Source: Lepidodermella squamata (taxonomy: Eukaryota; Animalia; Gastrotricha). From it: 64,000 bases of DNA. Each line of letters opens with the position of its first letter. Positions within the stretch are counted from its first letter, which is position 1. The notes beneath the pieces are model-generated. The model worked only from the letters and a program-made list of their open reading frames with translations, made no database searches and was not told where the DNA came from. This document shows, one piece after another, positions 11,849-63,727 of this stretch. Location of the stretch: assembly GCA_047495785.1 (NCBI GenBank), contig JBLDXI010000003.1, positions 124,001 to 188,000 on the forward strand, read 5' to 3'. Both the position numbers and the translations under genes were made by a program.

Positions 11849-14800
11849 ATGCTAAGACAAAGTTTCATCATTTTACAAGCGGCTTTCGTGCTGACAGTTT
11901 CCGCTGGTTATGATCCGCAGCCTGATACCACTTCGCTAGACCTACCAATTGGATACAAAGGACCACCGCTGTATATTTCGCAATGCTCTTTCGACGGTGA
12001 AAATTCGACGGTAAACAGCAATGGTACATTCACAATGTACTACAATGCGCAAAAAGTTGCAAATGGCTACCAACTGAACTCAATGTCGGGCCCGAATTCG
12101 TCACCGGATCAATCTTTCGCATTCCTTGAGAGCCTTGTAAGTCAACTCGTTGGAGCTGCTGTGAAGCTAATTATTTAATTTCCTGAAATCGCATATAAAC
12201 AGGCTGTAAATCAATATGCTGACAAAATGATACATTGGCGTCTTGAATATGACGTTGAGCTGCGTTACAAAACCAGTGGGCCTTCAAACGCATGGTTCGG
12301 ATTTTCCTTCACATCAAATCGATTTGCTATTAGTAAGAGCTCAACACATTACATTATTTATTAAAAAAACTGGAGCCACCCGAAATTGCTATGCTGATTT
12401 GAAATATAAACGCCCTAACCCTTAAACCTCGACTTATTCAGGTTTCAGAATATAATTTCACTTTCATAGATGTCTCGTCAAATTCGTCCCTATACTACGA
12501 CGTTTTCACGAGATATGGCACCGGCATACTCGCATTTCTAAAGTTGCAACCGGGCGGCAATATGGTCATCACCTGGAGGAGTAACTTGGACGATGGCATC
12601 TATGCTGCGCCACCTTTCAACGATTCAAAAGGAGGCAATACTTATAACTTCGACTCGAGCTGTGTCATGCCATCGTCAGGCTTCGCAACATTTCGCATGA
12701 TCTTCCAAAGCGTCCATGATATTCTAACTGTTTGCCTCTAATTTCACTCGTAAATTGCATTGAATTTCGAAATCTTACACAGGTAATGGCCATTCCAAGT
12801 TCTGGCTCGGCTGCTTGTTCAACTGTAATCAGGTTCGGCGGCTATTCTTACTACATTGGCTACCAGATGTTATTCGGCGTCCATAAACCTATTTTATACG
12901 CAATTAACGGAGCCGATGGGGACGTTCTTGTCAAAAGAATGCAAGTCGATTCGTCCATCGACCGTAAACTTTATTAACACAATCTGTTTTAGGTACCTGT
13001 GGGGTCTAACCGAGGACAATCCAGCCCCTCCAGACCTGTACACACTAGCACTCCCCCCTAACACTGGTAAGACTACTTTTGGCGGCTACGCAAGTTACGA
13101 CTATACGGGTGAATATAATTGGACGACGAAGCGGATTTCCAATACGGCGGGTGCGAAAAGCTGCGCGCTAATCAGCAGCAATCAGCTGCCGAGAGCATTC
13201 GGCTCACCAGTTAATAAATAGTCTATTTCAACTAATCTTACTAAACATCAATGATTGTATTTAGTATTACTTCAAATACTTTGGCGACTGGCGCATCGAA
13301 ATCGACTTTGATGCGACTTGCAGCCCAGATGGATCTGAAGCCTGGCTGGGCGCGATCTTCAGTCTCGATAGAACCGACCCTGACGTTGGTAAAGCCAATC
13401 GTAGGGGCCTATGAAAGTCATGAGCTAAATTACTTTTTGCAGTAACACTCGGAAATTCCTCTACTTACAATGGCGTAGATGTTCTTATGGGCTTCGGAAT
13501 CTGGCTGAAATTGCTCGCCAACAAGGGCGGTGAATTTTCCGCTGGCTACTATCCGACCTTAAGCAGGAACGTGACAATACCTCCCCCTGGCACCATAGCT
13601 TCAACTTCGCTGGGATGTGGAGATCCTGCATTTTTCGATGCATCTGGCAGTGTGAGTTTCCGCATCATTGTACAGCATGTCAACGACGCTATGAACGTAT
13701 CGCTGGCGAAACTGCCGGCGAATGGAACTACCACTTCTTACGAGTGTTTCACAAACTTCCCGGTCCCCGGATTTCGAGACACCGCCCTGAACAAAGCTAT
13801 GCAGTACGCCGTGCTTGGATCGGGGAGTCCTAGTGCAACTGTTTATGTCCGAAAGATGTAATTCTTTACTTGACTGACAATCATTAAATATTTCCTATTT
13901 TGAAAACAGGATGGCTTGGATGTTGACTGAAGGAGCTGCACCAACAGTGGCTCCAAAATCGACGACCACAGCAAGTTTCCCAACTAGCCCAACTAGTTTC
14001 TCAACTAGCCGGGCCAAAACTCCTCTAACAACAACAAAGAAACCACCGAGTAATCTCGAAACTACGGACCATGATAAAGCCCCAATTCCTGAACCGGTGG
14101 ACGGAAACTACGAGCCGCTAGTCAAGTACGAGGAACTCCAAGCGTGTCCCTATCTCGACCCGAGACGCCGATCTCCTGAGATGAATACCACAATATACCT
14201 GACATTCTCGGTGGATAGACTTGTTTCAATCAATCAGGTTGAAAGCGAGATATCACTCTGGGGCTCTCTGCTCGTCCAATGGCCGGTATTTTCCTGTTCA
14301 GCTGAATACACAGCCCCGAACGCTGACGCCACGGAGCGAGTCATCCCGGCGAACAACTTGGATATCTGGAGGCCGAAAATCGCCCTGACGAACTCGACTA
14401 GCGACGTCTATCTGAGCAACGACCACTACGGCGAGAAGGCTCAAATCATGTACTACGCTACGACGCCGAATCGAACGCTGTTCTTCCACTGGGACCGCGT
14501 TGGAACCTTTTCATCAGCATGCAAGTTGGATCTGACAAAATTTCCGTTCGATTCTCAGAAGTGCGAGTTCACTTTTCTAATGGATGAACCAGCTAGCTAC
14601 GTTGCAATCGGCGGTGTCTACGTCAAGTCTTACGATTCGCTGTCTAACGGTATTTGGACCCTGCTGGGCACTCGCACGAGTCGCGGAACTTGCGCATCGC
14701 CCTCCCGAACTGGAGCTGCTGTTTCGTATGGCAAAATCGCGTTGACTTACAAACGCGATCCAACGTACTTTGTCGTCAATCTAATGGTCCCTTGCTATCT

Positions 14801-15179
14801 GCTGATCGCCCTTGCCCTGGGCTCGTTGATGATGGAGCCTGATATGCCGGATAGGCCTGTTCTGTGCGCCACGTTGATGCTGGCCCTTGTCGTAGCTCAG
14901 GGCGATGTAATGAACAGTGTTTCGTCCAATTCGAAGCAGCTGTTGTACACCAACTACGTGTTGATGCTGTCCGGCATCGTAGCTTCTATAGCCATCTACG
15001 AAGTCGCAGCTACAGCCTTCTCCGTTAGCAAGCGATTCCACTTTCTGAACACGGAGGAAGTGAGCTTATGCGGGCGCCTGCAAGTTCCACTGATACGAGG
15101 TATCGACATGCTCATGTTCGTCACATCGTTCGAAGCCTTACTCATGGTCAATATGTACTTGGTCATCTTGACGCAGTAA
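11849..15179 (+). CDS. Atypical Cys-loop ligand-gated ion channel subunit with two N-terminal beta-rich repeats and a mucin-like stalk (copy A, 953 aa)
   Basis: Exons 11849-12136, 12203-12332, 12470-12729, 12783-12940, 12993-13209, 13265-13388, 13443-13857 and 13910-15179 total 2862 nt in frame; intron 4 is GC-AG. Signal peptide, loop A IWRPKI, Cys-loop CKLDLTKFPFDSQKC (C-x13-C), pre-M1 KRDP, four TM helices. Confidence 0.9.
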
Positions 15180-18100
15180 CAGACATCACATACTTTTCAT
15201 TATTTTGGACTTGAAAACTCGGAATTGACTTAGCATGGTGTATTAGTATACCCATTTCGGTGACAGACTTACATGCATAACATTTTTGACTAAGTTTTTT
15301 CCGCGTAGTGTGTTTCGAGTCACGTCTCCATGTTAATTTCAGTAATATCCCTGCTATCACCAATCTAACCAGTAGATATCATGATCACACGATAATTTTA
15401 CACTATCTGTGGTCACTTTACGAACTTCAGCAAGTAGTGGCGATATTGATCATGAATATTGATTTTAAAAATCATTGATGTTTCCGACATTCTGAGATGC
15501 CAATATGAGGAAGTTTTTATAAAATGCCTGCCAACCTAACTACCAAGTAGTATTGCCCTTTGATTGACTCGGATTGAGTAAGGTATTCGTGGTGCGAGTG
15601 CCAAGTGGGCCTACACGATATACTTGACGCTCTGTTCCAGCACAATATTTTTTATTATCCTGCCTATTTAAAACGCGATCACTAAATTGGCGATCAGCCG
15701 ATATTGATTCCAGGTAATTTGATTGGTAGTTTGAAAATCAATGATTTTTCTTATATATCGAAGCCTCGGAAGTCAACATTAAAAAATACTCTGCCTATCT
15801 AGTAATAAACAAGGTTGCTAAAATATGAAAAATTTGAAATGAATAAAGACTTGTAATCATGTAATGAAAGTACTTATTAACTTGACCCTTTTGTGAATAT
15901 GGAAAATACGTGGTGTATTTATGCTTCCTTTCAATAAAGGAAAATCAGGAATTGATCCTATAGATACACAAGCTATTTCAAAGCCGTTGTATCGAAAGTT
16001 TTCGGCGAACTACAAATCACTAAATTCTCGTTTTTTCACGAATTCACCGGTCCTAGAAGTAAACTCGGCAATAAATCGTCAGGAAACAAAAAACTCCTGA
16101 ATACTGAAATTTCAAGTCTCCACTTTTCTACAGCACAATAAGACTTTTCCCTCCCCATAATGGACTATACGACAAGAGACAAAAAAGCGGACAAGAGAAG
16201 CAATTACCAAATGTCACAACATTTTACGTCCTCATAGCGAGCCATGCATAAATCAGCCGGCTGCCAAAGGAAAAAATCTGAGGAAAAATCAGTGCAGTAG
16301 ATGCAATAATACCAGTATTTTCCGATGATACAAAAAAATGAGGCCAATATCTCGCAGCAACAGCGAATTGGAGGACCTGTTAGGTTACACCAGCAGGCGC
16401 ATTTCCCACCGCCGTTCCGCTTCGCCGCTCTTCGCTAAAAAGCTGCAAAATTACTTGAGGGTAAGTCATATATCACCATTTTTCCGAAGTTGAAACAAAA
16501 ATTCCGAAGTTGACCGCGAGAATTATGACTTCACCAGCAATAATATGCGTGTGGCGGTTGCAAGCGCGACATACCATTGCTGTGGGAAGTCACCATCTAG
16601 CGAGTCGAACATGCCGAAAAAAATCTCCGAAAAAAAACTGCAGTAATAACAATGATCGACGCGCGATGACGACTTTGTGATGGCGACTTGTTGGAAAATT
16701 AACCGGCTCGCATGGCGTTATTTGCGATGACAAGACGGAGAGAGAGATTGCGTTTTGTTGACGCCGCACCTGTCTCTAGGGGGTGGCCAATGGCTGGCTG
16801 GCTGGCTGGTCGCCGATTTATTGCCCGTCGTCGTCGTCGTCATCGCTGTTATTGCGATGAAAGATCAAAACAATAACGCGCGCGCTCGGAGGGCGATGGC
16901 GAGCGCGCCTATAATAATGATAATGACAACAATCGTCGCGCGCGCTCGCAACATTTTATGAGCTGACTCTTTGCATAAATACAAAATCATGTGTTTTATT
17001 TATTGCAGCTCTGAGCGCGCGCGCAGTTGGGCGCTCGCGCAAATCATAACAATCGCGAACGCGCGCATCTGCCGCGCGCAAATATACGCGCGCCAATAAT
17101 ATCCGGGACTTTTCGCAATTAAACAACAGTTGACCCGGACCAAAAAAATCGAGGCTTTTCGATGTCCATGTTGTTGTTATTGTTATTGTTTATTTATTTA
17201 TTCTATTGTTGTCTGTCATTCAAGTCGCGCAACAGCTAGGGTGTTGTATAATGCTGAGCGAATTTCCGCCCGGGTGGTCGCCGATCCCCTGGTGGCCGCT
17301 GCGATTTTCAGCCGTCGCTAGTTATCACCAGCGCTATAAAAAGCCTCGAAAAATCCTCATCCCTCATAAAATCTCAGCCAAGTTTTGATATGGCTTTGAT
17401 TATCACTGCGTCAAATTGAACCTTTCGTTAAGCTTTGAAAATACATACCCTCAAAAACTAGTATTTCATGGTGGAATTGAAAAATCCTCAAAATTCCCTT
17501 GAAATTTCAGTTTAGATCACTGCCGTAACGTGACGAGTAACAAAATGCGGCCCATTTTTCTTAGTTTTTATATTTGCTCAGTTGTCATTTGCACAAATGT
17601 CGCATCCAGAAACAGAGCGCACAATATTTACTGAATTTTCAGCGATCATTTTTGTTGCAGATTTCAAGAGATCACTTATATGACTTGCAACTCTGAAATT
17701 TTTGAATCGATGATATATACAGTAGAAACAACGCAGCTCAAAAAAATAAACGTAAAACTAGTCAGAATCCGGCGTAATTTCGTCCATACCGATAACTACC
17801 AAACCAGTTACCATTGGGTTTTCCGGCGGATTTTTCGCGAAAATCGGGTTGGAAGGATGGGACAGTGATTCATTTGAGAAGCAATTTGAGAAACAAAAAT
17901 TCAAAAATCCCAATCAAATCGAAAATACCGAAATATTTATCAACTAAAAGTGATTGATTTGTTAAATTATATCGCTGAAGTGCAACTTGTAAACTGGCCG
18001 CTCATGGCGCGAAAGGCATGTCATATGGAAATCTGAATCTGCCAGGCAGGAATAACAACAGGAAAATTGAAATTTAAAACTCGAAATTTTCGGGAAATAT

Positions 18101-28991: not shown

Positions 28992-30632
28992 ATGAGTGAG
29001 TCAAAAGATATCGGCGATGATTTCTATCGCGCCTGTCGGACTGGCGATGTATTCAGGGTGAAGGAATGCGTCGAAAAAGACAGCAGTCTTCCCTTCGAAT
29101 TCTTCGAAAACTGGAATACCTTCAGCGACAGAGAAACTGGTCTCATGGCCGCTGCTGCTCACGGTCATGTCAATATCTGCGATTTTTTGCTCCGTCACCC
29201 GGGTGTTGACATCAATTTCGTCGGCGAGGAAGGCGAGACTGTTTTAACTGTAGCTGTTGCGTTCGATCAACTCGGAATCGCTAGATTTTTGCTGGAAAAC
29301 GGTGCCGATATTAACAGCAATCGATCAGGCACCACCAGTGAGACTCTGTTAACACGAGCTCGTCAAAATCCACAAATGGTTCGCCTATTGGTGGAATTCC
29401 GAGCCGACGTCAACGCAACTAACGGAAAAGGCTGGACGCCCGTAATGTGCAGCTGCGAATGTCGCAGATCCGATATTGTACGTTACCTAGTGCTAGAGGG
29501 ACGAGCCTCAGTCTCACCTAGTCCGGCGTTTGAGTACTATGGCGAAGATCTAAGTGCGGTATCGATAGCTGCTCGTATTGGCTGTTTGCAGTTGTGTCAA
29601 TTTCTCGCAGAACGAATGGGCAGGTAAATTTTAGCAACTACTTGCTAGCCTTCTGTCAACGATTTCTTCTGAAGCGAATTCGATGCAGGCTCAGTGTTGA
29701 GATCGGCATGCCATGGCGCTGGCCGGATGAACAGCTCGAAAGACCCATTCAGAGTTGCCGAATGGGCCTTACAGCAGTTCAAGCAAGATTTCTCGCAAAA
29801 AGACAGATACGGCAACACGGCATTGATCATCGCTGTTTCTAGGGATAACCCCGAACTTGTGGAACTCCTCCTGAAATCGGGAGCCGCTAATACGCTAAAG
29901 ATGGCAAATAAACAAGGCGAAACAGCTCTGTTAATGGCCTACCCTCGTTATATTCAGGCTGACCAGTGGTTTAACTACGACGCTATGATCCGTCTGCTTC
30001 TCAAGTATGGCGCAGATGTACATGAGGCAAATCACATCACCGGCGAGACGATTGTTATGCGCTTATTCAGAATCGATATTCAACCGGATACAGTCGAATT
30101 CATACTCGATTGTGGTGCCGATGTTAAGGTCAACGATTCTTCGGGCAGCGGCGTGTTACAGGTGTTCTGCAATTCAATTCTCGATCGAAGGAATCTTGAG
30201 ATGAAATCTACTGATCAAATGGCGAAATGGCTGAAACTTATTGCCGTCGGATGCGGACTCCAGTTACCATTCAATGAAATGCCGGAAGTAATCCCTGAAA
30301 TTTGCTCGCTGCTCAGCGATGAGGAATTTGAGCTTGCTTTTATCACGTTGGACGCTCCATTTATATCTATAGATTTCGAACAATTGAGGCGCAAAGCGTC
30401 TCTCGTCCATGAAGACTTTTACCGCCAAGATTTGAGGCGAAGGAGGCGCGAAAGAATTGATGACCTCGAGCGTAGATTGGAAAGATTGCGGCCTTTGACT
30501 CTGGCGAGGTTGTGCCGAATCAACATTTTACGCTGCTTACCTGTTGGCTGGCAAAGGAGAGGTCTTGCTTTCGATGAGCTCCGCAGATTCTTGCCAGGCC
30601 CACTTGTCCAATATCTAAGATTTATTGCTTAA
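28992..30632 (+). CDS. Ankyrin-repeat and SOCS-box protein (ASB-like E3 adaptor), 2 exons, ~529 aa
   Basis: Exons 28992-29623 and 29675-30632. Several ankyrin repeats (ETGLMAAAAHGH, GETVLTVAV..FLLENGADIN, GNTALIIAV). C-terminal SOCS box PLTLARLCRINILRCL...LPGPLVQYL. Confidence 0.88.
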
Positions 30633-39575: not shown

Positions 39576-39846
39576 TTCCAAGCTTTTAGCCGTGAGTGAG
39601 CTCTGAGATCTCTGATAAGAGAAACTGAATGTCTATCAAAATGCAATAACTGAATTATTGTCGGATCTGGCGAAAAGGAAACGCAGGGCTCGGAGTGGGT
39701 TGTTTTGATCTGATAGAGAGTGAAATTCTTGTGAAGGAAATACAGATGTAGTCACAAACATCAGGCTATAGGGATATTTGATAGGAAATGGAATCAGTCA
39801 GGTGATTTCAATCAATAATGATGTCAACTATAAAAGCCGCACATTA

Positions 39847-41535: not shown

Positions 41536-41920
41536 TCAATGAAACGGGCAATAGGAAATTGTGCGACGAAAAAGTGATGGAAGAAAGTTGATGGGAGTGA
41601 TAGAGTGAGTGACTTTAGCGTAGAGCAGGTTGTTATTACGGTTCCCAGAAAGATAAGTCATAACGACCTCATAGACAGTTTTAGCTACTACAAGCGCTGA
41701 CAACATGAGAACATAATGTGTACAGCAGCTGTTTCTTAGTCTAAGATGTGCGCTCAAAACATCAGATTGGGTCACGACTATCGCTAACTTCACAGTGGAT
41801 CAGAGAAAAGACCGATCGGCGACATGAGGCTTTCTTCATGAGGCAGGAACTTGGGGCGGGAATAATAAGGGGAAATGTTGTTGTAGGATGGTCCCGTTTG
41901 AGGACCGTTTTCCATTGGGA
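41536..41920 (-). pseudogene. Highly decayed relic of the Cys-loop channel family (M1-M3 region)
   Basis: Frameshifted fragments LKRD...LIIP, HVADR, AIVVTQSDVLS and YVLMLSALVVAKTVYEV match the paralog text KRDP...NLIIP / VADRP / ALVVAQSDVLS / YVLMLSAVVAAITIYEI. Confidence 0.7.
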
Positions 41921-42552: not shown

Positions 42553-43815
42553 TCAGACTGCCATGCCCAGGTATAAATTGATAGCCAGCAGAGCTTCGAA
42601 AGCCACCATGAAGGCGAATGAGTCGACTATTCGAATGAAGGTAATTCTTCGCACATCAATACTCACAATTCGTGAAAATACCTTCTCATATTCAGGATTA
42701 GCAGCGAGATTGGTGAGAGCTATCACATAGACCGTGATAGCTGCTACAACAGCTGATAGCATTAGAACGTAATTTGTGTATAGCAGCTGTTTGGGGGTAT
42801 CGGAAACGCTTTTCAATACGTCAGACTGAGCCACAACCAACGCGAGCATGACAGTCGAACACAACCTTCGAAGTCAGGCTGCATGAGGAGAGAACCGAAA
42901 GCGAGACCGATCAGAAGGTAGCATGGTATCATCAAGTTGACGATAAAATAAGCCGGGTCGCGTTTGTAAGTTAGCGCTATCTTTCCATACGAGACAGGGG
43001 ACCTTGTTCGGGAGGGCGAGGGACATGTTCCGCGAGTCGTTTTAGAATAAACCAAACTCCACATGCCATCGGAAAGTGAATCGTATGACTTGACGTAGAC
43101 GCCTTCAATGGAGGCATAGCTAGCCGGCTCGTCCATTAGAAAAGTAAACTCGCAGGTCTGAGAGTCAAAAGGGAATTTCGATAGATCCAGTTTGCAAGCC
43201 GATGAGAAGGTTCCAACTCGGTCCCAGTGGAAAAACAAAGTTCGATTCGGCGTAGTTGGATAGTACATGATTTGAACTTTTTCACCGTAGGTTCCGTTGT
43301 TCAGATATACATCATTCGTTGAGTTGGGTAACGCGATTTTCGGCCTCCAGAATTCCACGTCATCCAGAGGTCTGATCCTTTCCGTTTGATCAGCAGCGGG
43401 GGCAGTGTACTCAGCCGAACAGGACAAAACCGGCCATTGAACGAACAAGGAGCCCCACAGGGATATTTCACTATCCGCTTGAGATTGAGACAAGTCTTTC
43501 CGCTGAAAAGGTTAGATACACGGTTGTATTCAGCTGAGGAGATCGACGTTTCGCTTTCAGAAACGGGCAAGGTGCGATATCTATGTACTCAACCAATGGT
43601 TCGTAATTTCCGTCTAGTAGATCAGGGATTGGAGCTTTGTTATCAGGAATGGTCAGAGACTCCGAGTTCGGCGTTGAAATAGTTTTGGAGGTATTTCTAG
43701 TCGATGCGAATCCAATCGATAGAGGCAGCGAGGTAACATTCGGTGATGGATCATACCCAGCGATAACTGCGGCAATAAAAGTTGTTTCAACGATAAAAAA
43801 AGTTGTCCGAAGCAT
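42553..43815 (-). pseudogene. Copy B: intronless Cys-loop channel lacking both N-terminal repeats, with two frameshifts
   Basis: The signal peptide and GYDPSPNVTSLPLSIGF run straight into a short stalk and the ligand-binding domain. A 2-nt deletion at ~43482 gives an immediate TAG. A 10-nt deletion at ~42865 removes DRPV. Otherwise very similar to copy C (both end YLGMAV). Confidence 0.85.
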
Positions 43816-44872: not shown

Positions 44873-47800
44873 TCAAACTGCCATGCCCAGGTATATATTA
44901 ATACCCAGCAAAGCTTCGAAAGCCACCATGCAGGCGAAGGTATCAACTAGCCGGATGAAAGAGATTCGACGCCCTGCTACGGTCACAAGTCTCGAAAAAA
45001 GCGAATCGTAGTCAGAGTTAGCAGCTAGATTCGTAATAACGATTTCGTAAATCGTAATAGCTGCCACGACAGATGATAGCATTATAACGTAATTTGTGTA
45101 TAGCAGCTGTTTCGAGTTCTGCGACACGCTGTTCAGAACATCGGACTGAGCTACAACCAGTGCCAACATGATCGTTGAGCACAACACCGGCCTATCGGCG
45201 ACATCAGGTTGCATGATGAGAGAACCGAAAGCGAGGACGATCAGAAGATAACATGGAATCATCAAGTTGACGATGAAAAAAGCCGGGTCGCGTTTGTAGG
45301 TCAGGGCGATCTTACCATAGGATACAGGAGCTCCTGTTCGGGAGGGCGATGCGCAAGTCCCTCGACTCGTCCTCGCGTTTATCAGAGTCCACATACCATT
45401 AGAAAGCGAATCGTAAGACTTGACGTAGATACCGCCAATGGCAACGTAGCTAGCCGGCTCGTCCATCAGAAAAGTGAACTCGCAAGTTTGAGAATCAAAG
45501 GGGAATTTCGATAGATCCATTTTGCATGCTGACGAGAAGGTTCCGACCCGGTCCCAGTGGAAAAACAAAGTTCGATTCGGCGTAGTTGGATAGTACATGA
45601 TTTGAACTTTTTCACCGTAGGTTCCGTTGCTCAGATAAACATCAGAAGTTGAGTTTGGCAGGGCAATTTTAGGCTTCCAACAGTCCATGCTACCAGCAGG
45701 AATGATCCGTTCTGTCATGTCAGCATTAGGAGCTGTATATTCAGCGGCACATGTGAAAACCGGCCATTGAACAAGCAGGGAACCCCAAAGAGATATCTTG
45801 CTCTCGGATTGATCGATCGAGATCAATCTATCTACTGAAAAGGTGAGATACAAGGTCGTGTTCAATTGAGGAGATCGGCGTTTCGGTTTCAGGAACGGGC
45901 ACGGTTCGAGATCCTCGTACTCGACCAATGGCTCGTAATTCCCATCTAGCGGATCAGGGATTGGAGTTTTGTCATCGTACGTCCGAGAGTTGAAACTAGA
46001 TAGATAGTTGGGCGGTGAAGTAGACAGAATAAGAGCTGCGGTGGCCGACTTGGATGAGACACTAGTACTCTTTGCTGGTAAGCTTGCCGCTGAGAAAGTC
46101 GAAGAGGCAAAATTTGTTGAGCCAGCGGTTGTGAAGGCTGCCAAATTAGATGACGTCGAGCTGCTCGCAACGGAAGTTGTTGACGTTGGCGCCAATGTCG
46201 GCGTATTATCTGAACTGAATTGCCACAGTAATCTGAAATAAATGCAAAAATACAAAGAGGTGCTAAATAATACACGGTCTATGATTAGTTGATTAGACCG
46301 CATTGATCGCACAACAGAGATGCAGAGACCTTTTCTCCAGCACCTCTCTACATTTCAGATTTGCCATAGGTTTTTTCTCTATTATAAGTCCAGGAATGGT
46401 ACAAAATGCTAACAAAGTTAAACAAGTGAGCCCAGTGCTTTGGATTTGATTTGATTTGATTTGATTTAGACCCAATTTTCACTGATTTAGATTTTAAATG
46501 ATTGATTTACGCATTCTGATTTGATTGATTTTGATTTAGCCTTGGTGATGCAATCAAAAAACTTGATACCGCGAAACCAAGACCACACTTCCTTTTTGAT
46601 GAAAATATGCTATGGAAAGGGATGGTTACTTCAAATTCGCGTTATTTTAACAATTTCTTGACATTTCGAAGCCCCCAACTCCCTAAAAATCCCGATGTTT
46701 CGCGATTTATTGTGATTTATGGTTGTCGATGATTTGATTTGATTTATTTATTGCTGGAAAATTGGGACAATGATTGATTTTGATTAATTGAAGGAGGTGG
46801 GACTACTCCAAAACAAATGACACCAAAATAATAGCAACCATAACAGCCAAACATTTTGGCTGTTTTGGTCTCTTTCGTTTTGTCTTGGCTGTTTTGGAGT
46901 AGTCCCAAGGAGGTCCGTGATTTAAGCCGTAAATCAAATCAAATCGAATCCAAAGCTCTGAGTGGGCCATGGTTTTTGACCCATTTCAGAGCGTCCCGAG
47001 CATTGGCTCTTCCGGAAAATTTTTAAAAAATCTAGACAAATTAATTTATCCATATTGAGAATTTTCTCTATCCAACGATATACAATTTTTGCAGTAATTA
47101 ATTAATCTTGACTTTCCGATATTTTTTGGCTTCAATATTAATATCATTATCACGCAACTTGGACTTTGGATTCTCGCGCCGCTTGGCTTTTTTCAGATTT
47201 GTTCGCAGCGAAAAATCTGTATTCTAGCCAAAAAAAATCGGAAAATCAAGATTAATTAATTACTGCACAAATTTTATATCGTTGGATAGAGAAAATTCTC
47301 AATATGGATAAATTAATTTTTCTAGATTTTTCAAAAATTTTCCGGAAGAGGCAACCGTGGCAGAAGAATGGCAAATTTGCCAAAAATCAGCAAAAGTAGC
47401 TGTTTTCACCAAATTCTATAAAATTAACACTGCGAGCTTACAAGATGTACCTGGGCTCATTCGATAGACCCTGAAATCTAGTATTTATCTACTGAAACTC
47501 AAAAAATTAGAAAAGGGAATATTTGGTAGGTCGATTTTTGAAATTAATTAAAATTATAATGGGTGGATAGGGCGTTGAGTGGTATAAAAAGTGGTCGCGT
47601 GCCGCAGTCTTTGCAATAACAGCTCCAATAAATTCACTATAGGAAGATCGTTTGCGTCCTATCTGTTACAGTGTTGTCTATGGTCCCGAGTATATTAGCA
47701 TGCCCATTAGCATGAAATTTGAGGAGGTATGCCATTATAAAACGATCTAAAGTACGTACGCTTTTCGAAAGGCAACATAATTTGGGGTTCCAAATGCATT

Positions 47801-50800
47801 TAGAGAGTATCTCATTGATTTGAAGTAGGCAGCGTTGCGAAAACCAGGAACCGGGAAATCCTTGAAGCAACTGTAAGCTGCCGTCGTTCCGTTGGCTGGC
47901 AGTTTCGCTACGGAAACGTTAACGAAATCGTTAACGACCTGAACAGCGATGCGGATACTCATATTTCCATTTGAATTGAAAAATGCCGAGTCGCCACATC
48001 CCGGAGGCGAGAATGCTGTCCCAGGTGGCGGAACAGTGACGTTATCTGTTTTGTTTGGGTAATAGCCGATGTAAAACTCGCCTCTGCCCGGGAGAAGATT
48101 CTGCCATATGCCAAACCCATAGAGACCACTGAGGCCGGCGTTAGGAAAGCTAGAGTTGCTGATATTCACTACGAAAACGCATTCCGTGCTTCTACAGAGA
48201 AGTAGGCTCTGAGTAACTTACTTTTTGTCAGTAGGATGGTGTCGAGATTGAAAATCAATCCCAGCCAACCTTGCGATCCATCAGCGCTGCAGGCGACGTC
48301 GAAATCGAACTCGATGCGCCAATCAACATACAAATAATTGAACGACTGAAATACATTTTCGAGATAATCGACATTGTCGGAAGGCGGTAAAGGGATATTT
48401 TACGTAGATTTTATACTCGCTGCCATAACCACGGGCGTAAAGCGCATAGCGTTTTTCGATTGGCGGGTAAAGAGGCCTGATTGTGGTATTGTGCTCCCCA
48501 GTCATGTCGAAGCTCACATAAGGGTTGAAAGTAGCCCTGGCGGCATTTGCTGGCAGCGCTAACGTGTAAGCATCTGGAATTGGCGGATTGCTATATGTGA
48601 GACCCCAAAGGTACCTAATGAAGCAAAAAAAGCAAGTTTTGTTACTGAAGCGATAGCGAGATTCCAGGAAACAACAAAACCCCCCTCTGACCCGCCCAAG
48701 ATTCCTCTGATATGGTCAGATTCTGATATGTACGCCACACGCTCCACGAAGGCCAACTTTGAACTTTTCGGTGTGTTTTAAAGAAAAAAATCATTTGAAA
48801 GGTGTTCTCACTCAAAAAATATAAAGAACGTGCTTCAACAAAACTTCACAAGTAGACGAAGACAGTTTGAAAAATTGAAAGTGAGCCTTTGTAATTGACG
48901 AGATTTCGTGCGACAGTCAGAATGGGAGCGCAAGCGCAGAGGAAAACCTGCATCTCTAAACCCGAAATCAGAAAAAAACCAAATGAGCGTTATCAAGTAA
49001 AAATTGGGGGTTGGGAAATTTTCTGTACTTTCCAGCAAAGCGCAAAAACTGTGCTGATTCGAAAAGGGACGATTTTTGGGTTCAAAGATGTCCTTACCCA
49101 GTTTTTCTTGAGGATTTAGTATTTCCAAATTAACAAATTAAGGACCAGAATTTCGGAAGATTGCTCAGCTCAGATTGCCCCAAAAATTGTCGAATATAGA
49201 TAAAAAATAACAGCAGAATGTATTGAAACAATAAATGAAATCAATGATAAATGAGGTCAATGACTGATTATTAACCTAGTTTGACTCCTTAACTGATCTT
49301 GAAAGTGGCACCAACATTGCACGATTTCAAAAATATTGATCGCCTAACCCCTCTTTTCACTTGTTAACGGTCAAAGTTGATCTTTTACAGGGTCAGGGGT
49401 GATCTTATTCTTATTAAGCTTTAAATTTACATTTTTCTCACGAGAGCCTCTCCGTCTGCTCCATTGATAGCGTAGAAACTAGGCATAAGCGTGCCGGATA
49501 GCATCTGATATCCAAAATTATAAATGGTGGCGGCGAACGCTATCTCAGTTGAACAGGCTGCTCCACCAGACATAGGAACAGCCGTCATCTTGATATTGAA
49601 AAATCATTGCACCCGGAAAGCAACGAGATGAGCCCTTACTGTTATAACGTCCAAGACGTTTTGGTAGATCATGCGGAAGTTGGCGACGCCTGAGGACGGC
49701 ATGACGCAGCTAGTGTTGAACGTCGATGTTGCCGACGACGAGGCGTTGAAGGGAGGTGGAATTGGCGGGCCAATGTCCATGACCAATCTCCACGTGACTA
49801 TGGCTCTACCGCCTGGAGCAAGCCTGAGGAATGTCAATAAACCGAATCCATAGTTAGTGAACACGTCGTAGTAAGCCGAAGAAACCGACGAGACATCTTG
49901 GAGGTGGAAACAGACTTGGATTAAAGTCTTCTACAAATGGGAAGCTTACTTTGGTTCATGCGATTCGAAGTTAATGAAAATCCGAACCAGGCATTTGATG
50001 AGCCGTTGGTTTTGTATCGCAGCTCAACATCGTACTCCAAACGCCAGACTAGTAAGTAGCCTGCATAATTGCTGCCCACTGCCTATTTTTTGTAGAGGGC
50101 AGTTTGATAAACAAGACAATTTTTCATTTGTATCTATATCCTGACATACCGTAACGAGTGGTAACTTTGGAAAAAACGTGTTTTTCGAACATTAAAAATC
50201 AGCCTTATTTGCTCCTAAATTTCTGAATTTTTTACAAAAGGTGGGGATGGTGGTTCTTGAATTTACTGCAAATTTTAAAAAATTTCAGAATTTTACCTGA
50301 CCTTTGACCTTTGGCTAATTTTATTAGACAATTAGAGGGTAGTTTTGGACACTCATTTGCATATGCAATTTCATTGCAATTTCACTGTGAAATATCTGGT
50401 TTTCATAGTTTTTCATTTAATCTTGGGTCAGATTTCGAAAAAAATTATTAACAGATGGCGCATCCTCTGTTTCTCAGAAGTTCAATAAAAATAGGTTTCT
50501 GCGCAGCAGCATACTTAACCCGTCCAAAAGTGTCCAAAATTACCCCAATTTTCACCTGTTTTTTAGGTAAATGCCCTGCCAAAACGCGTCGACGTATTGC
50601 CATTTTATCTTCGATTATAGGTAGAGTATAGATAGGAGAATACTCATGCCAACTTTCATTGAAAACTGATCGATTAGAAAGATAGATAGGGGGTCCCAAA
50701 ACGGCACCCAAAGTCTAACTGCTTGCAACTTGTTCCGAAATTGGATTTCAGCTCCAATTGCCTTGATTTTTATTTCAAACGGAAGCTGAAGAGACGAAGA

Positions 50801-51301
50801 ATTTTATGCAAAAACCCCCATGATTTAAACGTTCAACCCTGGAAAGCTAAACACCTGCAAAGCCGAAAGTGTCCAAAGTTACCGTGTCCACAATCACCAC
50901 ACGTTACGGTATAGGTGGATTTTTTAAGTACCTATTCTCATACACGTTATCGTGGAAAGCAAAACATTCTGACACGCCTCTCACCTGAGGTGAAACATGG
51001 AATAACCAACCTGGCCTTGTAGAATCGCCAAGGATTCATTTGGCGACGAATTTGCAGCCGACATTGAGTTCAATTGATAGCCGTTCGCAACTTTTTGAGC
51101 AGCGTAATACGTTGTGAACGTGCCATTGCTGTTCACACTCGCATTCTCGCCATCGAATGAGCAGTGCGGCACGTAGATAGGCATTCCTTTATAGGCCGTC
51201 GGTAAAGGCAAGGAGGAAACATCTGGCGAAGGATCAAAGCCAGCGAAAGCAGCTGCGATCAGAGTTGCTTCGATGATGATGGGGAAAATCGTCCAAAACA
51301 T
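44873..51301 (-). CDS. Atypical Cys-loop channel subunit, copy C (980 aa)
   Basis: Exons 51301-51011, 50082-49950, 49896-49640, 49588-49431, 48614-48404, 48345-48222, 48168-47760 and 46232-44873 total 2943 nt in frame. Intron phases are identical to copy A. Cys-loop CKMDLSKFPFDSQTC. Confidence 0.9.
46433..46960. mobile_element. hAT-like MITE in the last intron of copy C
   Basis: TIRs cagtgctttggatttgatttga / tcaaatcgaatccaaagctctg; 8-bp TSD agtgagcc / agtgggcc (one mismatch); internal (gattt)n arrays. Confidence 0.75.
46799..46906. mobile_element. 108-bp GG-terminated MITE (Merlin-like) nested inside the hAT-like MITE
   Basis: TIRs gggactactccaaaaca / tgttttggagtagtccc; perfect 8-bp TSD aaggaggt at 46791-46798 and 46907-46914. 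Confidence 0.8.
47007..47350. repeat. Long fold-back inverted repeat (~125-bp arms, ~95-bp spacer)
   Basis: 47007-47131 (ctcttccggaaaatt...ttttttggct) is the near-perfect reverse complement of 47226-47350. Confidence 0.85.
50149..50909. mobile_element. Non-autonomous Tc1/mariner-pogo-type element in intron 1 of copy C
   Basis: ta|ccgtaacgagtggt ... accacacgttacgg|ta; subterminal gtaactttgga / tccaaagttac. Confidence 0.7.
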
Positions 51302-53484: not shown

Positions 53485-56400
53485 TCACTTTGTGAAGACG
53501 ACAAGGTACATGTTAGCTACTAGTAAAGCTTCGAGAGCGATGCAAAAGACCAGCAAATCGAGGATTCGAATGAGCGGCAAGCAGAGCTTCTTGGAGATCA
53601 TAACATCCATACTGGTTAAACACTCAAACCTCTTGCTGATCACCACGACTGTCGCGGCAATTTCGTAAACAGCAATTGTGGCGACTATTCCTGAGAGCAT
53701 GAGGACGTAGTCAGTATACAAGAGCTGTTTCGAGTTCTGAGATACACTTGACAACACATCGGATTGCGCAACGACCAAGGCTAGCATGAGAGTGGCGCAT
53801 AGCATCGGTCGATCTGGTACATCAGGTTCCATTAGCAAGGAACTGAATCCGAGGAAAACAAGGAGATAGCAAGGAATCATCAAGTTGACGATATAGTAAG
53901 TCGGATCGCGTTTGTAGGTCAAAGCAATCCTTGCGTATGAAACAGCTGCCCCAGTTCTCGAGGGAGAAGGGCATTTGCCTCGGCTTGTGCGCGAACCAAC
54001 AAGGGTCCACATGTTGGTCGATAGCGAATCGTAGGATTTGATGTAGACTCCGTTTATAGCGACGAAATCAGCAGGCTCGTCCATCAGAAAGGTGAATTCG
54101 CACGTCTGAGAATCGAACGGGAATTTTGTCAAGTCCATCACACAGGCCGATGAAAACGCACCCACTCTGTCCCAGTGGAAGAAGAGCGTTCTATTAGGCT
54201 TAGTTGCGTAGTACATGATTTGAGCCTTCTCCCCGTAGTTATCGCTGGTCAAATAAACGTCAGTTGTGGAGTTGGTCAGGGCTATTTTCGGCTTCCAGAA
54301 GTCGAAGTTATTCGCGGAAATGACTCGCTCAGTGGCATCGGCATCTGGAGCTGTGTATTCAGCCGAACAGGAAAAAACTGGCCATTGAACGAGCAAAGAA
54401 GCCCATAGCGATATCTCACTTTCAACCTGGTTAATCGCGACCAGACGCTCTACGGAAAAGGTTAGGTACAGAGGAGTATTCACCTGGGGAGCGTGTCTAT
54501 TCTTATTCAGATAGGGGCAAGCTTCGAGGTCCTGATAAGTGACGGTAGGATCGAAATTCCCGTCCAAAATATCAGGAATAGGGGCGCGATCAGGGTTGGA
54601 ATTGTTGATTAAAAGATCCTGAGATGAGACCATATTTGGGGCTGATGTTCCGGAAGTTAGCGCCGAAACTGTACTTGTAACCTGAGCTTTAGCTGTTGTA
54701 ATTATCGGCATAGTAGTCGGTTGAGGTGGTTGGACCGTTACAGTAGTCGGTGGCATTGTTGTTACACTTGGAGAAGTGGTTGTTGATGTCATCATAGCTA
54801 TTCCAGTTGATGAGCTAAGACTGGTCGAAGTGCTGGACCTCATCGATGTACTACGGCTTGTCGATGTGCTAGGGCTTGCCGATGTTGTAGTCTGTGCGAC
54901 ACTTTGAGTCAAATGCCATACCATGCTGCGTAAAATAACCAGCATCATACAAACATGTTCCTAACTATTATAAACGCCTACATTTTCTTTAGCATAATAG
55001 CACTTGGACTCCCTATTCCCTGCAGAGCGTATAAGAGAGAATGGTCAAAGGCCATGCTTCGAAAGCCCGGAACTGCGAAGTTGGTGAAACAGGTCAGGGC
55101 TGTAGCGGAGGGAAATTTCGCGATCGAAACATCTACTGAATCATTGACGTGTTGAACAATGATACGATAGCTCGCGCTTCCTGAGGCGTTGAAAAACGAA
55201 GCGTCGCCGCATCCTACTGGAGAAGGTGTTGTTCCATTGGGTGGAACTGCGGCGCCGTCGATTTTATTCGGGAAGTAGCCGGCGTAAAACTCGCCGCGAT
55301 TCGCCAGCAAATTTTGCCACAGGCCGAAGCCATTCAAGCTTTTAATAGTGGGACCGCTGTCTGATGAATACGCAAAAATGATTTCAGATGACTATTTCAC
55401 GTATCAAAATGTTGTATTTTATTTACCTATCCACGGGTAGTTTGCGTAAACACTGAAAATTACGCCAAACCAAGCTGCCGTCGAGCTGCACGTCACGTCC
55501 AAGTCAATTTCAACGCGCCAATCGCCAAAATAGTTGTAGCAGTACTAAAAAAGTCATATTTGTTATAATGCTAATTTATGGGTGAATTTAAAATGACCCC
55601 AGAGTAATAAGTAGTGCCGATAAGTCCATAACTTTTCGGATAAGATGTAGGCTGCAGGGGCATCGTTGTCCAGTTGTATTCTCCGGAATAGTCGAGACTT
55701 GCATAGCCGCCGAAAGTCGTCTTGGCGTAATTAGGAGGCAGAGCGAGGGTGGCCAGATCAGGCGTTGGAGGGCTATCTTCGATAAGGCCCCACAAATACC
55801 TAATAGTAATATATAATCTGCAATTTACATCATCTGCAGTTTTTCGGAAATTCTGTTTGGCGAAAATTCACTATCATGCAACCTTCAATTTTCCAGCATT
55901 CACCAGGTTGAAAAGATTTTTCCAATTCATTCTCCCACTTTTATCAAAAATCTTCAAGTCTCAACTCGTGTTGGACTATTTACCGTACTGCCCGGAACAA
56001 AAACCATGACATTTATAAATTTCAAACGTCGATGAACCCCTGACATTTAAAAGAGACTGACATTTATTTATCCGAACCAACAAGTAACTGCCTAGGTAAC
56101 CACAATGGCATGCAATTCCCCTAGATTCTACGTATTTTGACCCACAAAATTGATCCAAGAATAGTAATCAGAGCCAATCAGAATAGCTGATATTACCTTA
56201 TTAGTGACCTTCAATATGGCCCCTGCCACTGACCTGACATTTATTTTTTCGAACGACCTCTAACCTCTGACATTTATTTGAGGCTGCCATTTATTCGAGG
56301 CTGACATTTTTTTCGGGCAGTACGGTAGGTCCACGTGGTGAAATGTAGGACCATGAATAGGGCCATGACTGCAGAGTACAAACGAACGATTTTGTTTCAT

Positions 56401-58056
56401 TGGATATTGAATCTTCATTTCTCAATAAGGAATCCCGGCGAGGCCATGTCCTCTCGGGTAACTCTTCACGGGGAATCCGTCTATTTCTAATATTGACAAC
56501 TCCTAATCGATTGTCGAATATCGATTATCGATTTTGAAGTGATTTCTTGACTTTTTAAGCGATCAAAGTGATCGGCGCTTGTTACTTTGTGGATATGATT
56601 ACCCCCACCGATTTTTCTTTAACAAGGGTGAGTTTTCGACGTCTATTCCACTATAAAATTATGATTCTGCTGGTTTCAAAATGGGCCAATTATTCCAAAA
56701 TGTCCAGCTTCAAGGGGTTAAGCTTATCCCCTTCAGAGTTTTATCGCAGCTCTCTGGGGGATCATTCTTCCCCCTTAGCCCCCAGTCTCGTAACACTGGC
56801 TTTCGTTGGGCATCCCAGTTAACACTGGACCTGTCTTGAAATTGCAATTTCTTTCGAAATCCCAATTTCCAATTTTACCTTCCGTTTCAGCCCACCGAAG
56901 GCAGGCACTGAGGGCATTACCTCGAGTTCGCGGCATGGTTGCCACCACAATTACAGCAGCAAACAGCACGCTAAGGTATAATATCGCATTTTTCTTGTTA
57001 GAAAATTTACATTCTACATTCTACTACTGTGCTTTCAAGTCATATGATGGGCGATAGAAGCTTACACTCTTTTAACGACGGCATCTCCGTCAGCACCGTT
57101 GATGGCGTAAAAAGATGGCAAAGGCGTGCGCAACAGTATTTGGTAACCTTGATAGTAAGGGGCGCCTTGAAACGTTATTACTGTTGAGCAACTGGCTCCA
57201 CCGGAACCTGGAACAGCCGTAATCTGCAAATGAAAAAATGCTAAATTCAGAAAGGAGAAACCTCAGTCGACATACAGTTAGGACATCGAGCACGCTCTGG
57301 TATATCATGCGAAACTTTGCGTTGCCAGACGACCCCATGACACAGCTCAGGTTAAGGGAAAAAGTGTTGCTTATGCCATTGTTGAAAGGCGGTGGCGCTA
57401 GATTGCCGTCGTCATTGCCACCGTTGTACGTGGTAATCAACGGCCCGCCCGGTTGCAGCTTGATCAAAGTCAGTAAACCGAAGCCGTATTTAACAAAAAC
57501 ATCGTAGTAAGAAGATGAGTTCGACGAGAAGCCTGTCAGCAAGTGTGAAATAGTCTCCGACGTGATACGAAGGAATTGTATAACTTACGGGGTATCAGCC
57601 GATTTGATGACCAAATGAATGCGAACCAGCCATTCGAAGGCCGACCGGGATCGTAATTCAGCTCAAGCTCGTATTCCATTCGCCAGTTTATCAAGCTGGC
57701 ACCTAGAGCTCCAACAGGATTCTTTTTTACGGATAACAAGTGAAGCTGATTGCAAGGAGGATATAAAATCGTACCTGGCTGGTTAACATAGCAAATGATT
57801 CATTTGCGGATGGGTTTATTGCATTGATTGAATTCAGCTGGTAACCAGTTGTCCCCTTTCCAGCAGCGTACTGCGTTACGAACGAGCTGTTGCTGTTGAT
57901 CGACGGGTTTCCGACGTCGAAAGAAAACGAGGGGATGTACAAGGGCGTTCCTTTGAACCCATTCGGTAGTGGCAGCGCGGTTGTATCCGGGGTGGGGTCG
58001 TAACCAGCTGAAACTGCCGCAACCAAGGCTGCTTCGAAGAGAAAAAGTCTGAGCAT
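53485..58056 (-). CDS. Atypical Cys-loop channel subunit, copy D (~989 aa)
   Basis: Exons 58056-57775, 57721-57589, 57532-57276, 57223-57066, 55799-55598, 55544-55427, 55360-54982 and 54925-53485 total 2970 nt in frame; two splice sites are weak but phase-consistent. Longest S/T/P stalk; Cys-loop CVMDLTKFPFDSQTC. Confidence 0.87.
55983..56325. mobile_element. TA-flanked MITE in intron 4 of copy D
   Basis: ta|ccgtactgcccggaacaaaa ... tttttttcgggcagtacgg|ta; internal repeats of tgacattta. Confidence 0.78.
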
Positions 58057-58689: not shown

Positions 58690-58745
58690 TACTTCGAGGA
58701 TCATCCAATCGACACGCCGATGTCGATTGGATGATCCTCGAAGTA
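58690..58745. repeat. Perfect 25-bp hairpin with 6-nt loop
   Basis: tacttcgaggatcatccaatcgaca-cgccga-tgtcgattggatgatcctcgaagta. Confidence 0.9.
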
Positions 58746-61147: not shown

Positions 61148-61310
61148 CAGAGCTGGAAAACTTGCAGAAATGACGCACCAGGTGCGTAGGAAATTTTGAG
61201 AAAATTAGGCAATTTTGGCTTACGAAACAGTCAAAAATGTAAGGAAATGGTAGTTTGGTAGGAAATTAAGAAACCGGTGCGTAGGAAATCCTACAGGTTT
61301 TCCAGCTCTG
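61148..61310. mobile_element. 163-bp hAT-like MITE
   Basis: TIRs cagagctggaaaac / gttttccagctctg; perfect 8-bp TSD gtttgcag at 61140-61147 and 61311-61318. Confidence 0.85.
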
Positions 61311-61402
61311 GTTTGCAGTAAGGGAGAACAACTTCAATTCTATCGAATTTAGACTTAGACCGAGCCGCCAGATTTTTCAATTCGAAATTTGAAACTGAAT
61401 AT

Positions 61403-63727
61403 TTACATGACAGTAATCACAAGATGGAGATTGACGCCGACGATGGCTCCTAAAGCAACTAGAAAAGCCATGACATCGATGAGCCGCAGCAATGTGACTT
61501 CATATCTCCGTGCTACCATCGTTTTCGCCCCATACAAAAATCGTCGATAGCTTGCAGTATTACAAATGGCTGTTACAAGAATTTCGTAGATGGTGATAGC
61601 TGCTACAACCGCTGACAGCATTAGAACGTAATTCGTGTAAAGCAGCTGTTTCGAGGACTCAGAAACGCTGCTGAGAACATCAGATTGCGCTACGACCAGC
61701 GCTAGCATAACGGTCGAGCATAGGACAGGCCGATCCTCAACACCAGGCTCCATGAGTATCGATCCAAGGGCCAAAGCGATTAGCAAATAGCACGGTATAA
61801 TCAAATTGACGACGTAGTACGTTGGATCGCGTTGGTAAGCAAGGATGATCTTGCCATAGGAAACAGGCGCCCCAGTTCGAGAGGGCGATGGACAAGTTCC
61901 CCGATACGTCTTTGAGTTAACCATGGTCCAAATTCCATTGGAAAGGGATGCATAGGCTCGAACATAGACCCTAGCTATAGAAACATATGCAGCCGGCTCG
62001 TCCATCAAAAAGGTAAACTCGCATGTTTGCGAATCGAATGGGAATTTTGTCAAATCCATGCTGCAAGACGATGTGAAAGTTCCGATTCGGTCCCAGTGGA
62101 AGAACAGCGTTCTATTGGGCCTCGAAGCGTAGTAGATGATCTGAGTCTTTTCGCCATAATCTTGGCTGTTGAGATACACGCTTCTTGAAGAATTGGGCAG
62201 GGCTATTTTCGGCTTCCAGAAATACATGTTATCAGCCGGGATGATTCGTTCGTTCAAGTCAACGCCAGGCGCTGTGTAGGTTTCGCTGCAAGATTCGACC
62301 ACCCATTGAGTCAATAGAGAGCCCCATAGCGAAATTTCTCTATGAGCCTGGTCTATCTCGATTAGTTTCTCGATCGAGAAGGTCAAATACAGCGATGAGT
62401 TCATTTCGGGCGATCGGCGACTAGCTGCTATATAAGGACATTTTTCAATATCTTGAAAGGTTACAGCTGGTTCGTAATTCCCGTCTATTGCATCGGGAAT
62501 TGGTGATTTATCCAGAAACAGTAGCGTTTGGTCGGTAGGAGCCACTTCCGTTGTTTTGCTACCCGACTTCCTTGTCGTCCTCCGTGAAGATGTGGACGAT
62601 ATTGATGATGTTGACAATGGAGCTGCTGTCGGGGCAATGCCGTCACTTAGCAGCCAGAATAATCTGTAAAAAAGATATTTTCTCACGCGGCTACAGAAAT
62701 TCAGGAAATTATTCTCACGCTTTTCGGACAGAAATGCTAGCATCTTGGGTGCCAAGTGCTAGCATTCCTAGACAAGCTTTCGAGAACGCTTTTGATCCAA
62801 AGCCAGGTACAGGAAGATTTTGAAAACAGGTGTAAGATGGCGTAAGGCCTTGGCCGGGCATTTTTGAAATCGAGATCTATTCAGAAAAAACTTTACTCTC
62901 CAGGGATGCGTAAGCCACAGTTAAAAAAACATAAAGAATTATGGGAGCTTATTGTGGCTGTTAAATGCTGCTTGAACCACAATATTAATGAAATATGGCT
63001 GAAATGCTGTAATAGCCAGAAACTAACGTTTATTTCATCGTTGACATGTTGAACAGTAATTCGATAACTCGTGTTGACATTTGAAGAGAAAAATCCGGCA
63101 TCACCACATCCAGGCAACGAAGAACTGCCTGTTGTTGGAGGTAACGGGAGGTTTGCTGTTCGATTTGCATAATAAGCAGCGTAAATTTCTCCTCGATTAG
63201 CGGCTATTACTTGCCAAATGCTAAAGCCGTACAACTCTGCTATGCCAGTTACATCGTTAGTTGTATCTGACCTTGCTGAAAAACATTTGTTTCAATTAAG
63301 ATGGGAAAAATCATGATTTTATCAGCCTTACTCCAGTTAGGACTGGGGCCGCTTAAGCTGAATATAACACCAAGCCACGTCGCAGATCCGTCAGAACTCG
63401 GCTTCACATCCAATTCAATCTCGAACCTCCAGTCTTTGAAGTAATTGTTGATCGGCTGATACAAATATAAGATCATCTATATTTTTTGGAAATATAGCTA
63501 GTAATCTCACGCTCAGGAAATAAGTTGCGGTTTGAGATCCTGGCTTGATGAGCGAGTAGGAATTTCCATCATTGTTAGATTCTGTGAACCTAGTAATTGA
63601 TGCAAACTCGCCGGTGTAGTCAGCGCTGACGTAGCCACCGTATCGCAAACTGCCGTAATTGCTAGGAAGAGGCATCGCGTATAAATCAGGCTGCGGGGGA
63701 GAGTCCTCCGTCAATGTCCAGAAATAC
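61403..63727 (-). CDS. Atypical Cys-loop channel subunit, copy E (3' part; 5' exons beyond the window end)
   Basis: Exons 63727-63511, 63455-63332, 63275-63028, 62876-62719 and 62663-61403 in frame. Encodes repeat 2, stalk and channel; Cys-loop CSMDLTKFPFDSQTC; has one more intron than A, C and D in this region. Confidence 0.87.

Follow-up and report, generated by a model that had tools for sequence, protein, structure and literature searches.

Cephalopod chemotactile receptors are divergent, tandemly expanded subunits resembling nicotinic acetylcholine receptors (nAChRs), which lack the acetylcholine site and serve contact chemosensation. Another pentameric ligand-gated ion channel (pLGIC), the bacterial DeCLIC, carries two jelly-roll N-terminal lobes on each subunit, which makes ten additional lobes per pentamer. 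Eukaryotic pLGICs are stated to be without such N-terminal domains (PMC9897478), and Jaiteh et al. deliberately kept terminal regions out of their inventory of pLGICs (PMC4795631). Here we analyse a window of 64,000 nucleotides (nt) from the gastrotrich Lepidodermella squamata (contig JBLDXI010000003.1, positions 124,001-188,000, forward strand; eukaryotic, with a GC content of ~43%) that holds a family of Cys-loop channel genes. Their predicted proteins bear two large homologous modules and a Ser/Thr/Pro-rich stalk ahead of the channel.

Channel genes with an N-terminal extension

Five mutually similar long open reading frames (ORFs) in the window match the Pfam family Neur_chan_LBD: 13911-15179 on the plus strand, and 42813-43493, 44873-46312, 53485-54948 and 61403-62755 on the minus strand. 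Short open segments that are conserved between the loci lie 5′ of every intact channel ORF. Gene models were obtained by enumerating frame-keeping donor and acceptor pairs, which were then assembled into full models with their splice dinucleotides checked. Three complete genes could be rebuilt in this way as single open frames of eight exons each, namely A (960 amino acids (aa)), C (980 aa) and D (989 aa), together with a partial gene E that is cut by the end of the window (Table 1).

The intact genes share one order of parts: a signal peptide, two homologous modules of ~250 aa, a Ser/Thr/Pro linker, a Cys-loop ligand-binding domain and four transmembrane helices. A first-pass annotation of this DNA had proposed this arrangement for A, C, D and E, a length of 950-990 aa for the complete proteins and a locally expanded family. 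The rebuilt models bear out all three points, with E followed as far as the window allows and with a decayed copy, B, added to the family.

Introns are GT-AG throughout, with the sole exception of intron 4 of gene A (12941-12992, plus strand), a GC-AG intron with the donor GCAAGT that was accepted because the matching phase-2 site has a GT donor in genes C and D. Intron lengths are mostly 51-66 nt, with a few of 0.8-1.5 kb.

Modules and channel in one polypeptide

The extension and the channel meet at the joint between exon 7 and the last exon. The junctions placed there (13857/13910 in A, 47760/46232 in C, 54982/54925 in D and 62719/62663 in E) are the best-scoring phase-compatible pairs; all are phase 2 and GT-AG, and coding conservation extends to both of their splice sites. 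The introns that they define differ widely in length among the four paralogs (52, 1527, 56 and 55 nt in A, C, D and E, respectively), and the reading frame is kept over all four.

A relative from a metagenome carries the same arrangement with no intron at this point. The cluster closest to the window genes includes P0151 (812 aa), which is encoded on contig L001. On this contig, a 48-nt intron, placed like intron 1 of the window genes, separates a signal-peptide exon from an uninterrupted ORF (601-3072) in which the two modules are followed by a poly-Thr stretch and the channel. The ORF continues straight through the point equivalent to intron 7, and the resulting 915-aa product is collinear with A, C and D.

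An alternative is that each locus holds two genes: a secreted lectin-like or mucin-like protein made from exons 1-7, and a channel of ordinary length made from the last exon, expressed from its own start or by operon trans-splicing. An ATG lies directly 3′ of the acceptor site in gene A, as this alternative would have it, and the junction is without RNA support in the available runs. However, in genes C and E the acceptor is not followed by any start codon ahead of the ligand-binding domain, and no last exon begins with the signal peptide that a pLGIC extracellular domain requires. Exon 7, for its part, has no in-frame stop ahead of the donor site in any paralog. We dropped the two-gene alternative, with or without an operon, because the last exons lack a start codon (C and E) and a signal peptide and because the L001 ORF is continuous; we regard it as very improbable.

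The RNA result deserves a separate word, since it counts against a single gene. No spliced joint was found in two public runs (X1 and X2, one labelled RNA and one unlabelled), which hold the locus only as short contigs and are uninformative on splicing. Both match the region 11700-15400 at only 90-99% identity; substitutions are numerous and each place is covered by several contigs, which suggests that the runs come from other strains, species or paralogs than the sequenced individual. Run X1 also contains strand-switch (‘opposite strand’) joints about every 100 nt that look like library or assembly artefacts. The four junctions, which the first-pass annotation had put forward for checking, are therefore upheld by score, phase and splice dinucleotides and have gained no spliced reads from these two contig-only runs.

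Taken together, strong comparative evidence shows that the genes, as predicted, encode the N-terminal modules and the channel in one polypeptide. The earlier claim that the channel and a long extension are parts of a single gene thus holds, on the phase-2 junctions, the last exons devoid of a signal peptide and the L001 ORF.

A duplicated module and a variable stalk

The extension had also been described as a tandem repeat, and the sequence of gene A agrees with an internal tandem duplication: modules 1 and 2 share 29% identity over 143 aa (blastp, E=2e-8), and the two can be aligned end to end across all paralogs. The intron pattern is repeated in both modules, with a phase-0 intron ~10 residues before a W-R-x-E motif, then a phase-1 intron, and then a phase-2 intron at the module end. 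Gene E has an additional phase-0 intron of 151 nt (62877-63027, minus strand) that splits exon 7, which is a single exon in A, C and D. Its position is homologous to the border between exons 3 and 4 in module 1, and it looks like a kept ancestral intron of the duplicated unit, which fits duplication of a four-exon unit.

The linker that joins the modules to the channel is 53-114 aa long in A, C, D and E and consists of 43-54% Ser+Thr+Pro, in keeping with the mucin-like character ascribed to it at first pass. Constraint differs along the protein. Ratios of nonsynonymous to synonymous divergence (dN/dS) between paralogs are 0.13-0.20 in the modules, 0.07-0.15 in the channel and higher in the stalk, with dS saturated. 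These values, obtained at saturated dS, indicate old copies under constraint. The N-terminal exons are under purifying selection, and the genes are real and selectively maintained.

A divergent nAChR-like channel

The last exon matches Neur_chan_LBD with 44.8 bits (cut-off 26; E=1.3e-11), and a Cys-loop of the form C-x13-C that encloses FPFD is present in A, C, D and E. Hydropathy of gene A gives four peaks, at residues 826-844, 854-872, 882-900 and 939-957, which leave only ~38 residues between M3 and M4. No match to Pfam Neur_chan_memb was reported for the window protein; such matches were reported for its relatives. The best matches in PDB are the nAChR subunits beta2, alpha3, beta4 and alpha6 (E=6e-14 to 1e-10), with alignments running from the ligand-binding domain through M3. 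In the beta2 alignment (E=6e-14), the WxP motif of loop A is common to the window channel and the nAChR. From its sequence, the window channel is a divergent, nAChR-like animal Cys-loop (pentameric ligand-gated) subunit, and we infer that it assembles as a pentamer.

In the M2 helix, position -1′ is Asp, 0′ is Arg and 9′ is Leu. This acidic, basic and leucine pattern is that of nAChRs, and so the pore is predicted to be cation-selective. In contrast, the acetylcholine-site residues are missing: where alpha3 and beta2 have the Tyr of loop A, the Trp of loop B and the Tyr/Cys-Cys of loop C, the alignment gives Thr, a gap or Asp, and Arg-Thr-Gly. The window channel thus has neither the aromatic box nor the vicinal Cys-Cys that mark acetylcholine-gated nAChRs, and without these residues in loops A, B and C the agonist is probably not acetylcholine.

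Two additional cysteines stand at the start of the ligand-binding domain (14130-14300 in gene A, plus strand), in an ELQAC-PY stretch and a QWPVFSC stretch. Neither varies among the paralogs or the metagenomic relatives, which suggests that the pair forms a clade-specific disulfide.

Relatives with the same and with other N-terminal domains

In an exhaustive HMMER search over 1.84 billion representatives, no sequence related to the window genes exceeded 35% identity, and the last-exon protein had no exact match in public assemblies. The metagenomic relatives P0151 (L001), P0158, P0006 (L016), P0007 (L013) and P0004 belong to the same channel clade at 26-35% identity, and all come from three ENA metagenome assemblies (ERZ23486764, ERZ23486787 and ERZ27333047). 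As in P0151, the Cys-loop channel of the other four is preceded by an N-terminal extension and a Thr-rich stalk. The order of parts in these relatives is that of the window genes (signal peptide, one or two homologous modules, Thr-rich stalk, channel), and their first intron lies at the window-gene position before the WR-x-E motif. They differ in belonging to another, intron-poor eukaryote with 37-39% GC, in that their modules are highly diverged, and in that some of the genes have a single module.

A profile made from the window modules only recovers the N-terminal parts of pLGIC ORFs of this set, with E=3e-4 for L001, E=2e-3 for L013 and E=0.03 for L016 among 943 ORFs. When metagenomes were scanned with the channel alignment, 11 distant loci came up, none of which (0/11) has the module. 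Two side observations concern the organization of these contigs. On L013, two pLGIC genes with N-terminal domains lie in tandem (5001-6761 and 11237-11761); on L018 (1-5437 and 6001-8745), one pLGIC gene with an N-terminal domain adjoins six tandem trypsin genes.

Most of the more distant relatives are eukaryotic Cys-loop channels, and the complete ones have signal peptides. In P0033, Pfam places Laminin_G_3 over two stretches ahead of the channel (E=6e-16), and at the position of the window modules it finds weak Laminin_G_3 matches in P0027 and P0026 and a weak EGF match in P0009. Among structure neighbours in the ESM Atlas are arthropod clusters with the architectures Pentaxin+LDLa+Neur_chan_LBD (88 members) and LDLa+Lectin_C+Neur_chan_LBD (63 members). 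Like the window genes, these database eukaryotic pLGICs (P0033, P0027, P0009 and the arthropod clusters) place an extracellular domain of a binding type before a Cys-loop channel; their N-terminal domains are recognised by Pfam, whereas the window modules are not. The presence of Laminin_G_3, EGF, pentraxin, LDLa and C-type lectin domains at the same position in relatives indicates that N-terminal domains do exist in eukaryotic pLGICs.

Fold of the modules

At the sequence level the modules are orphans and make up a new predicted family. The last large search with the modules found one further paralog of the relative (P0158) and nothing else. An Atlas search with exon 7 of the window alone was not recognisable, its nearest clusters being unnamed. 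When a module profile was compared by hhalign with the N-termini of 13 relatives, only weak signals appeared, for P0006, P0007 and P0017.

Indications of a fold come from the relative. In an Atlas feature search with residues 1-415 of P0151, the named neighbours were all L-type (legume-like) lectin clusters (score 0.93), which share 155-164 features where true family members typically share 170. The AlphaFold model of the relative’s complete second module has a low predicted local distance difference test score (pLDDT 40) and contains beta strands only, over residues 93-252. In a Foldseek search of 350,542 chains with this poor model, the first places went to VIP36, pea lectin and ERGIC-53, at non-significant E-values (E>=0.13). 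L-type lectins such as VIP36, ERGIC-53 and the legume lectins resemble the modules in a domain size of ~230-250 aa and in the all-beta content predicted for them; they differ from them in the lack of similarity at the level of hidden Markov models (HMMs). We know of no report of an L-type lectin fused to an ion channel.

Several results weigh against a lectin-like fold. Pfam gave no module match for the window exons (E up to 1) or for seven module sequences (E up to 10); an exon 7 profile run against 5.8 billion proteins and a large-database search with the N-terminus of P0151 also gave no match. Profile searches of PDB with the modules gave no match, to a lectin or otherwise, and hhalign found no similarity between the module profile and the Laminin_G_3 regions of relatives. 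Both AlphaFold models are of low confidence, that of exon 7 of gene A with a pLDDT of 53, and Foldseek with this latter model, the window’s own, gave unrelated matches. The lectin lead thus derives from the modules of the relative and not from those of the window.

An alternative is a fusion that is real but whose modules are not lectins. They would then be a lineage-specific all-beta domain, for instance for protein-protein adhesion, for anchoring to matrix or cuticle, or for assembly or chaperoning, and the L-type signal would be noise. The lack of HMM-level similarity to any lectin family, the feature counts below those of true members, the non-significant Foldseek values and the unrelated folds matched by the exon 7 model all speak for this possibility. 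On the other hand, the ten best named Atlas neighbours are all of one clan, an independent method ranks L-type lectins first among 350,542 chains, a module length of ~250 aa fits an L-type lectin domain, and paralogous clades have recognisable ConA-like domains at the same position. We consider a non-lectin domain rather unlikely and lean towards a ConA-like, L-type-lectin-like beta-sandwich, held as a lead only and based on structural models and feature neighbours. Of the ConA-like/DUF1080 fold named in the first-pass annotation, then, the ConA-like part survives in this form; DUF1080 in particular received no support from the searches made on the modules.

A possible role in capture or tethering

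The explanation that we favour, with some reservation, for these genes is that they encode divergent Cys-loop subunits to which module-bearing stalks are fused, with a role in capture or tethering. A pentamer would display ten modules on flexible, O-glycosylated stalks above the channel. The modules would bind glycans or another surface-borne ligand and thereby capture ligand for the channel, position it or tether it, while the channel itself would be gated at or near the canonical ligand-binding domain. Such a protein might act as a sensory or surface-recognition receptor rather than a synaptic one; the contact-chemosensory, mechanosensory or microbe-sensing roles put forward at first pass are conjectural. 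Capture, positioning or tethering is favoured over rigid allosteric coupling because the stalk evolves fast and is of considerable but variable length; rigid coupling of the kind found in DeCLIC or in the amino-terminal domains of ionotropic glutamate receptors fits poorly with a long disordered linker.

The modules could instead be the true gating sensors, with binding of a glycan or another ligand transmitted to the ligand-binding domain and directly opening the pore, or with tension on tethered modules opening the pore, as in a mechanosensor. The absence of the canonical acetylcholine-site residues would fit such a scheme, as would the modulation of gating kinetics by the N-terminal domain of DeCLIC (PMC9897478). 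However, a linker of 53-114 aa that is probably disordered and O-glycosylated, variable in length and fast-evolving in both length and sequence would be a poor transmitter of conformational change, and we judge this scheme improbable. A bolder version of the lectin lead, which we hold to be equally doubtful, would be a glycan-gated cation channel, in which a glycan from food, microbes, mates or the animal’s own mucus or cuticle binds ten stalk-borne L-type-lectin-like modules and directly gates or strongly modulates the pore. Were it true, this would be the first eukaryotic pLGIC with a functional accessory N-terminal domain. The capture or tethering role remains our preferred explanation.

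Decayed copies and neighbouring genes

The remaining channel ORF belongs to the fifth copy, B, a decayed paralog that has lost both modules and the stalk, so that a remnant of the signal peptide almost directly adjoins the ligand-binding domain and the transmembrane part. It runs through three frames, with two frame changes near 43490 and 42870, and may be the product of a deletion, a retro-type event or an assembly error. A nearby isolated transmembrane fragment, similar to gene C, is probably a scrap of another copy. Other ORFs in the window match the C-terminal exon of a tyrosine kinase, a Death domain, an exon of a trypsin and, in two ORFs, ankyrin repeats; a further one, a single exon of 566 aa, encodes a Band 7/SPFH protein. 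This set of neighbours is consistent with a metazoan genome.

Table 1 Features of the window, with the parts of gene A given separately
Feature	Positions	Strand	Details and basis
Gene A	11849-15179	+	Exons 11849-12136, 12203-12332, 12449-12729, 12783-12940, 12993-13209, 13265-13388, 13443-13857, 13910-15179; 960 aa
Gene A, exons 1-4: signal peptide (~20 aa) and module 1 (~265 aa)	11849-12940	+	Hydrophobic N-terminus read from sequence; homology of module 1 and module 2
Gene A, exons 5-7: module 2 (~250 aa)	12993-13857	+	blastp of module 1 against module 2; mirrored intron positions and phases
Gene A, intron 7, from module 2 to channel exon	13858-13909	+	52 nt, GT-AG, phase 2; best-scoring junction
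Gene A, stalk	13910-14081	+	57 aa, 49% Ser+Thr+Pro; composition
Gene A, Cys-loop ligand-binding domain	14082-14750	+	Cys-loop at residues 742-756; Pfam Neur_chan_LBD (E=1.3e-11), nAChR alignment, motif
Gene A, transmembrane domain M1-M4 and stop codon	14751-15179	+	M3-M4 loop ~38 aa; hydropathy, M1-M3 alignment to nAChR beta2
Gene C	44873-51301	-	Exons 51301-51011, 50082-49950, 49896-49640, 49588-49431, 48614-48404, 48345-48222, 48168-47760, 46232-44873; 980 aa; stalk 89 aa
Gene D	53485-58056	-	Exons 58056-57775, 57721-57589, 57532-57276, 57223-57066, 55799-55598, 55544-55427, 55360-54982, 54925-53485; 989 aa; stalk 114 aa
Gene E, partial (cut at exon 5; module 1 beyond window end)	61403-63727	-	Exons 63727-63511, 63455-63332, 63266-63028, 62876-62719, 62663-61403; module 2, stalk 53 aa, channel
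Copy B, decayed paralog	42556-43815	-	tblastn with gene C: residues 1-33 at 43815-43720, 614-667 at 43644-43483, 665-871 at 43493-42873, 878-980 at 42864-42556; three frames
Isolated 75-aa transmembrane fragment	41611-41832	-	Similar to gene C residues 869-943 (M2-M3 region), 45% identity
Neighbouring ORFs	292-915, 7216-7791, 9143-9694, 28992-30632, 37881-39581		Domain matches

Comparison with known receptors

The locus and its relatives present animal Cys-loop receptors with large, duplicated and selectively maintained N-terminal modules. The additional domains lie in the same polypeptide as the channel, according to the gene models and the continuous L001 ORF. Literature searches for eukaryotic pLGICs with a lectin, pentraxin, LDLa or laminin-G domain at the N-terminus turned up no account of them. 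The architecture is thus unreported in the searchable literature and present in databases. The first-pass statement that large added N-terminal domains are known mainly from prokaryotic pLGICs agrees with the literature, which calls them unknown in eukaryotes (PMC9897478); the uniqueness of the window genes was overstated in view of the arthropod clusters that have Pentaxin+LDLa or LDLa+Lectin_C before Neur_chan_LBD. The window genes and these clusters together suggest an overlooked class of modular eukaryotic pLGICs.

With nAChR subunits (beta2, alpha3, beta4 and alpha6), the window channel has in common the FPFD Cys-loop, the WxP of loop A and the -1′/0′/9′ pattern of M2. It differs from them in an M3-M4 loop of ~38 aa, in the added cysteines at the start of the ligand-binding domain and in an N-terminal extension of ~520-600 aa. 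The likeness to cephalopod chemotactile receptors lies in a tandem expansion of divergent nAChR-like subunits that lack the acetylcholine site; those receptors are of ordinary length and have no N-terminal modules or stalk.

Among prokaryotic pLGICs with N-terminal domains, DeCLIC, with its two lobes per subunit, offers a close parallel to the two modules of the window proteins. It differs in being bacterial, in having a Pro-loop and in having lobes that are packed directly on the extracellular domain, whereas the window proteins are eukaryotic Cys-loop subunits with introns, a signal peptide and a long mucin-like linker. No sequence similarity between the window modules and DeCLIC was detected, in searches that included no homology test aimed at the DeCLIC N-terminal domain. 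Should the modules bind glycans or surfaces, these proteins would tie a recognition domain directly to a channel, a new receptor logic for the sensing of chemicals or microbes, and would provide a eukaryotic counterpart to DeCLIC for the study of accessory domains and pLGIC gating.

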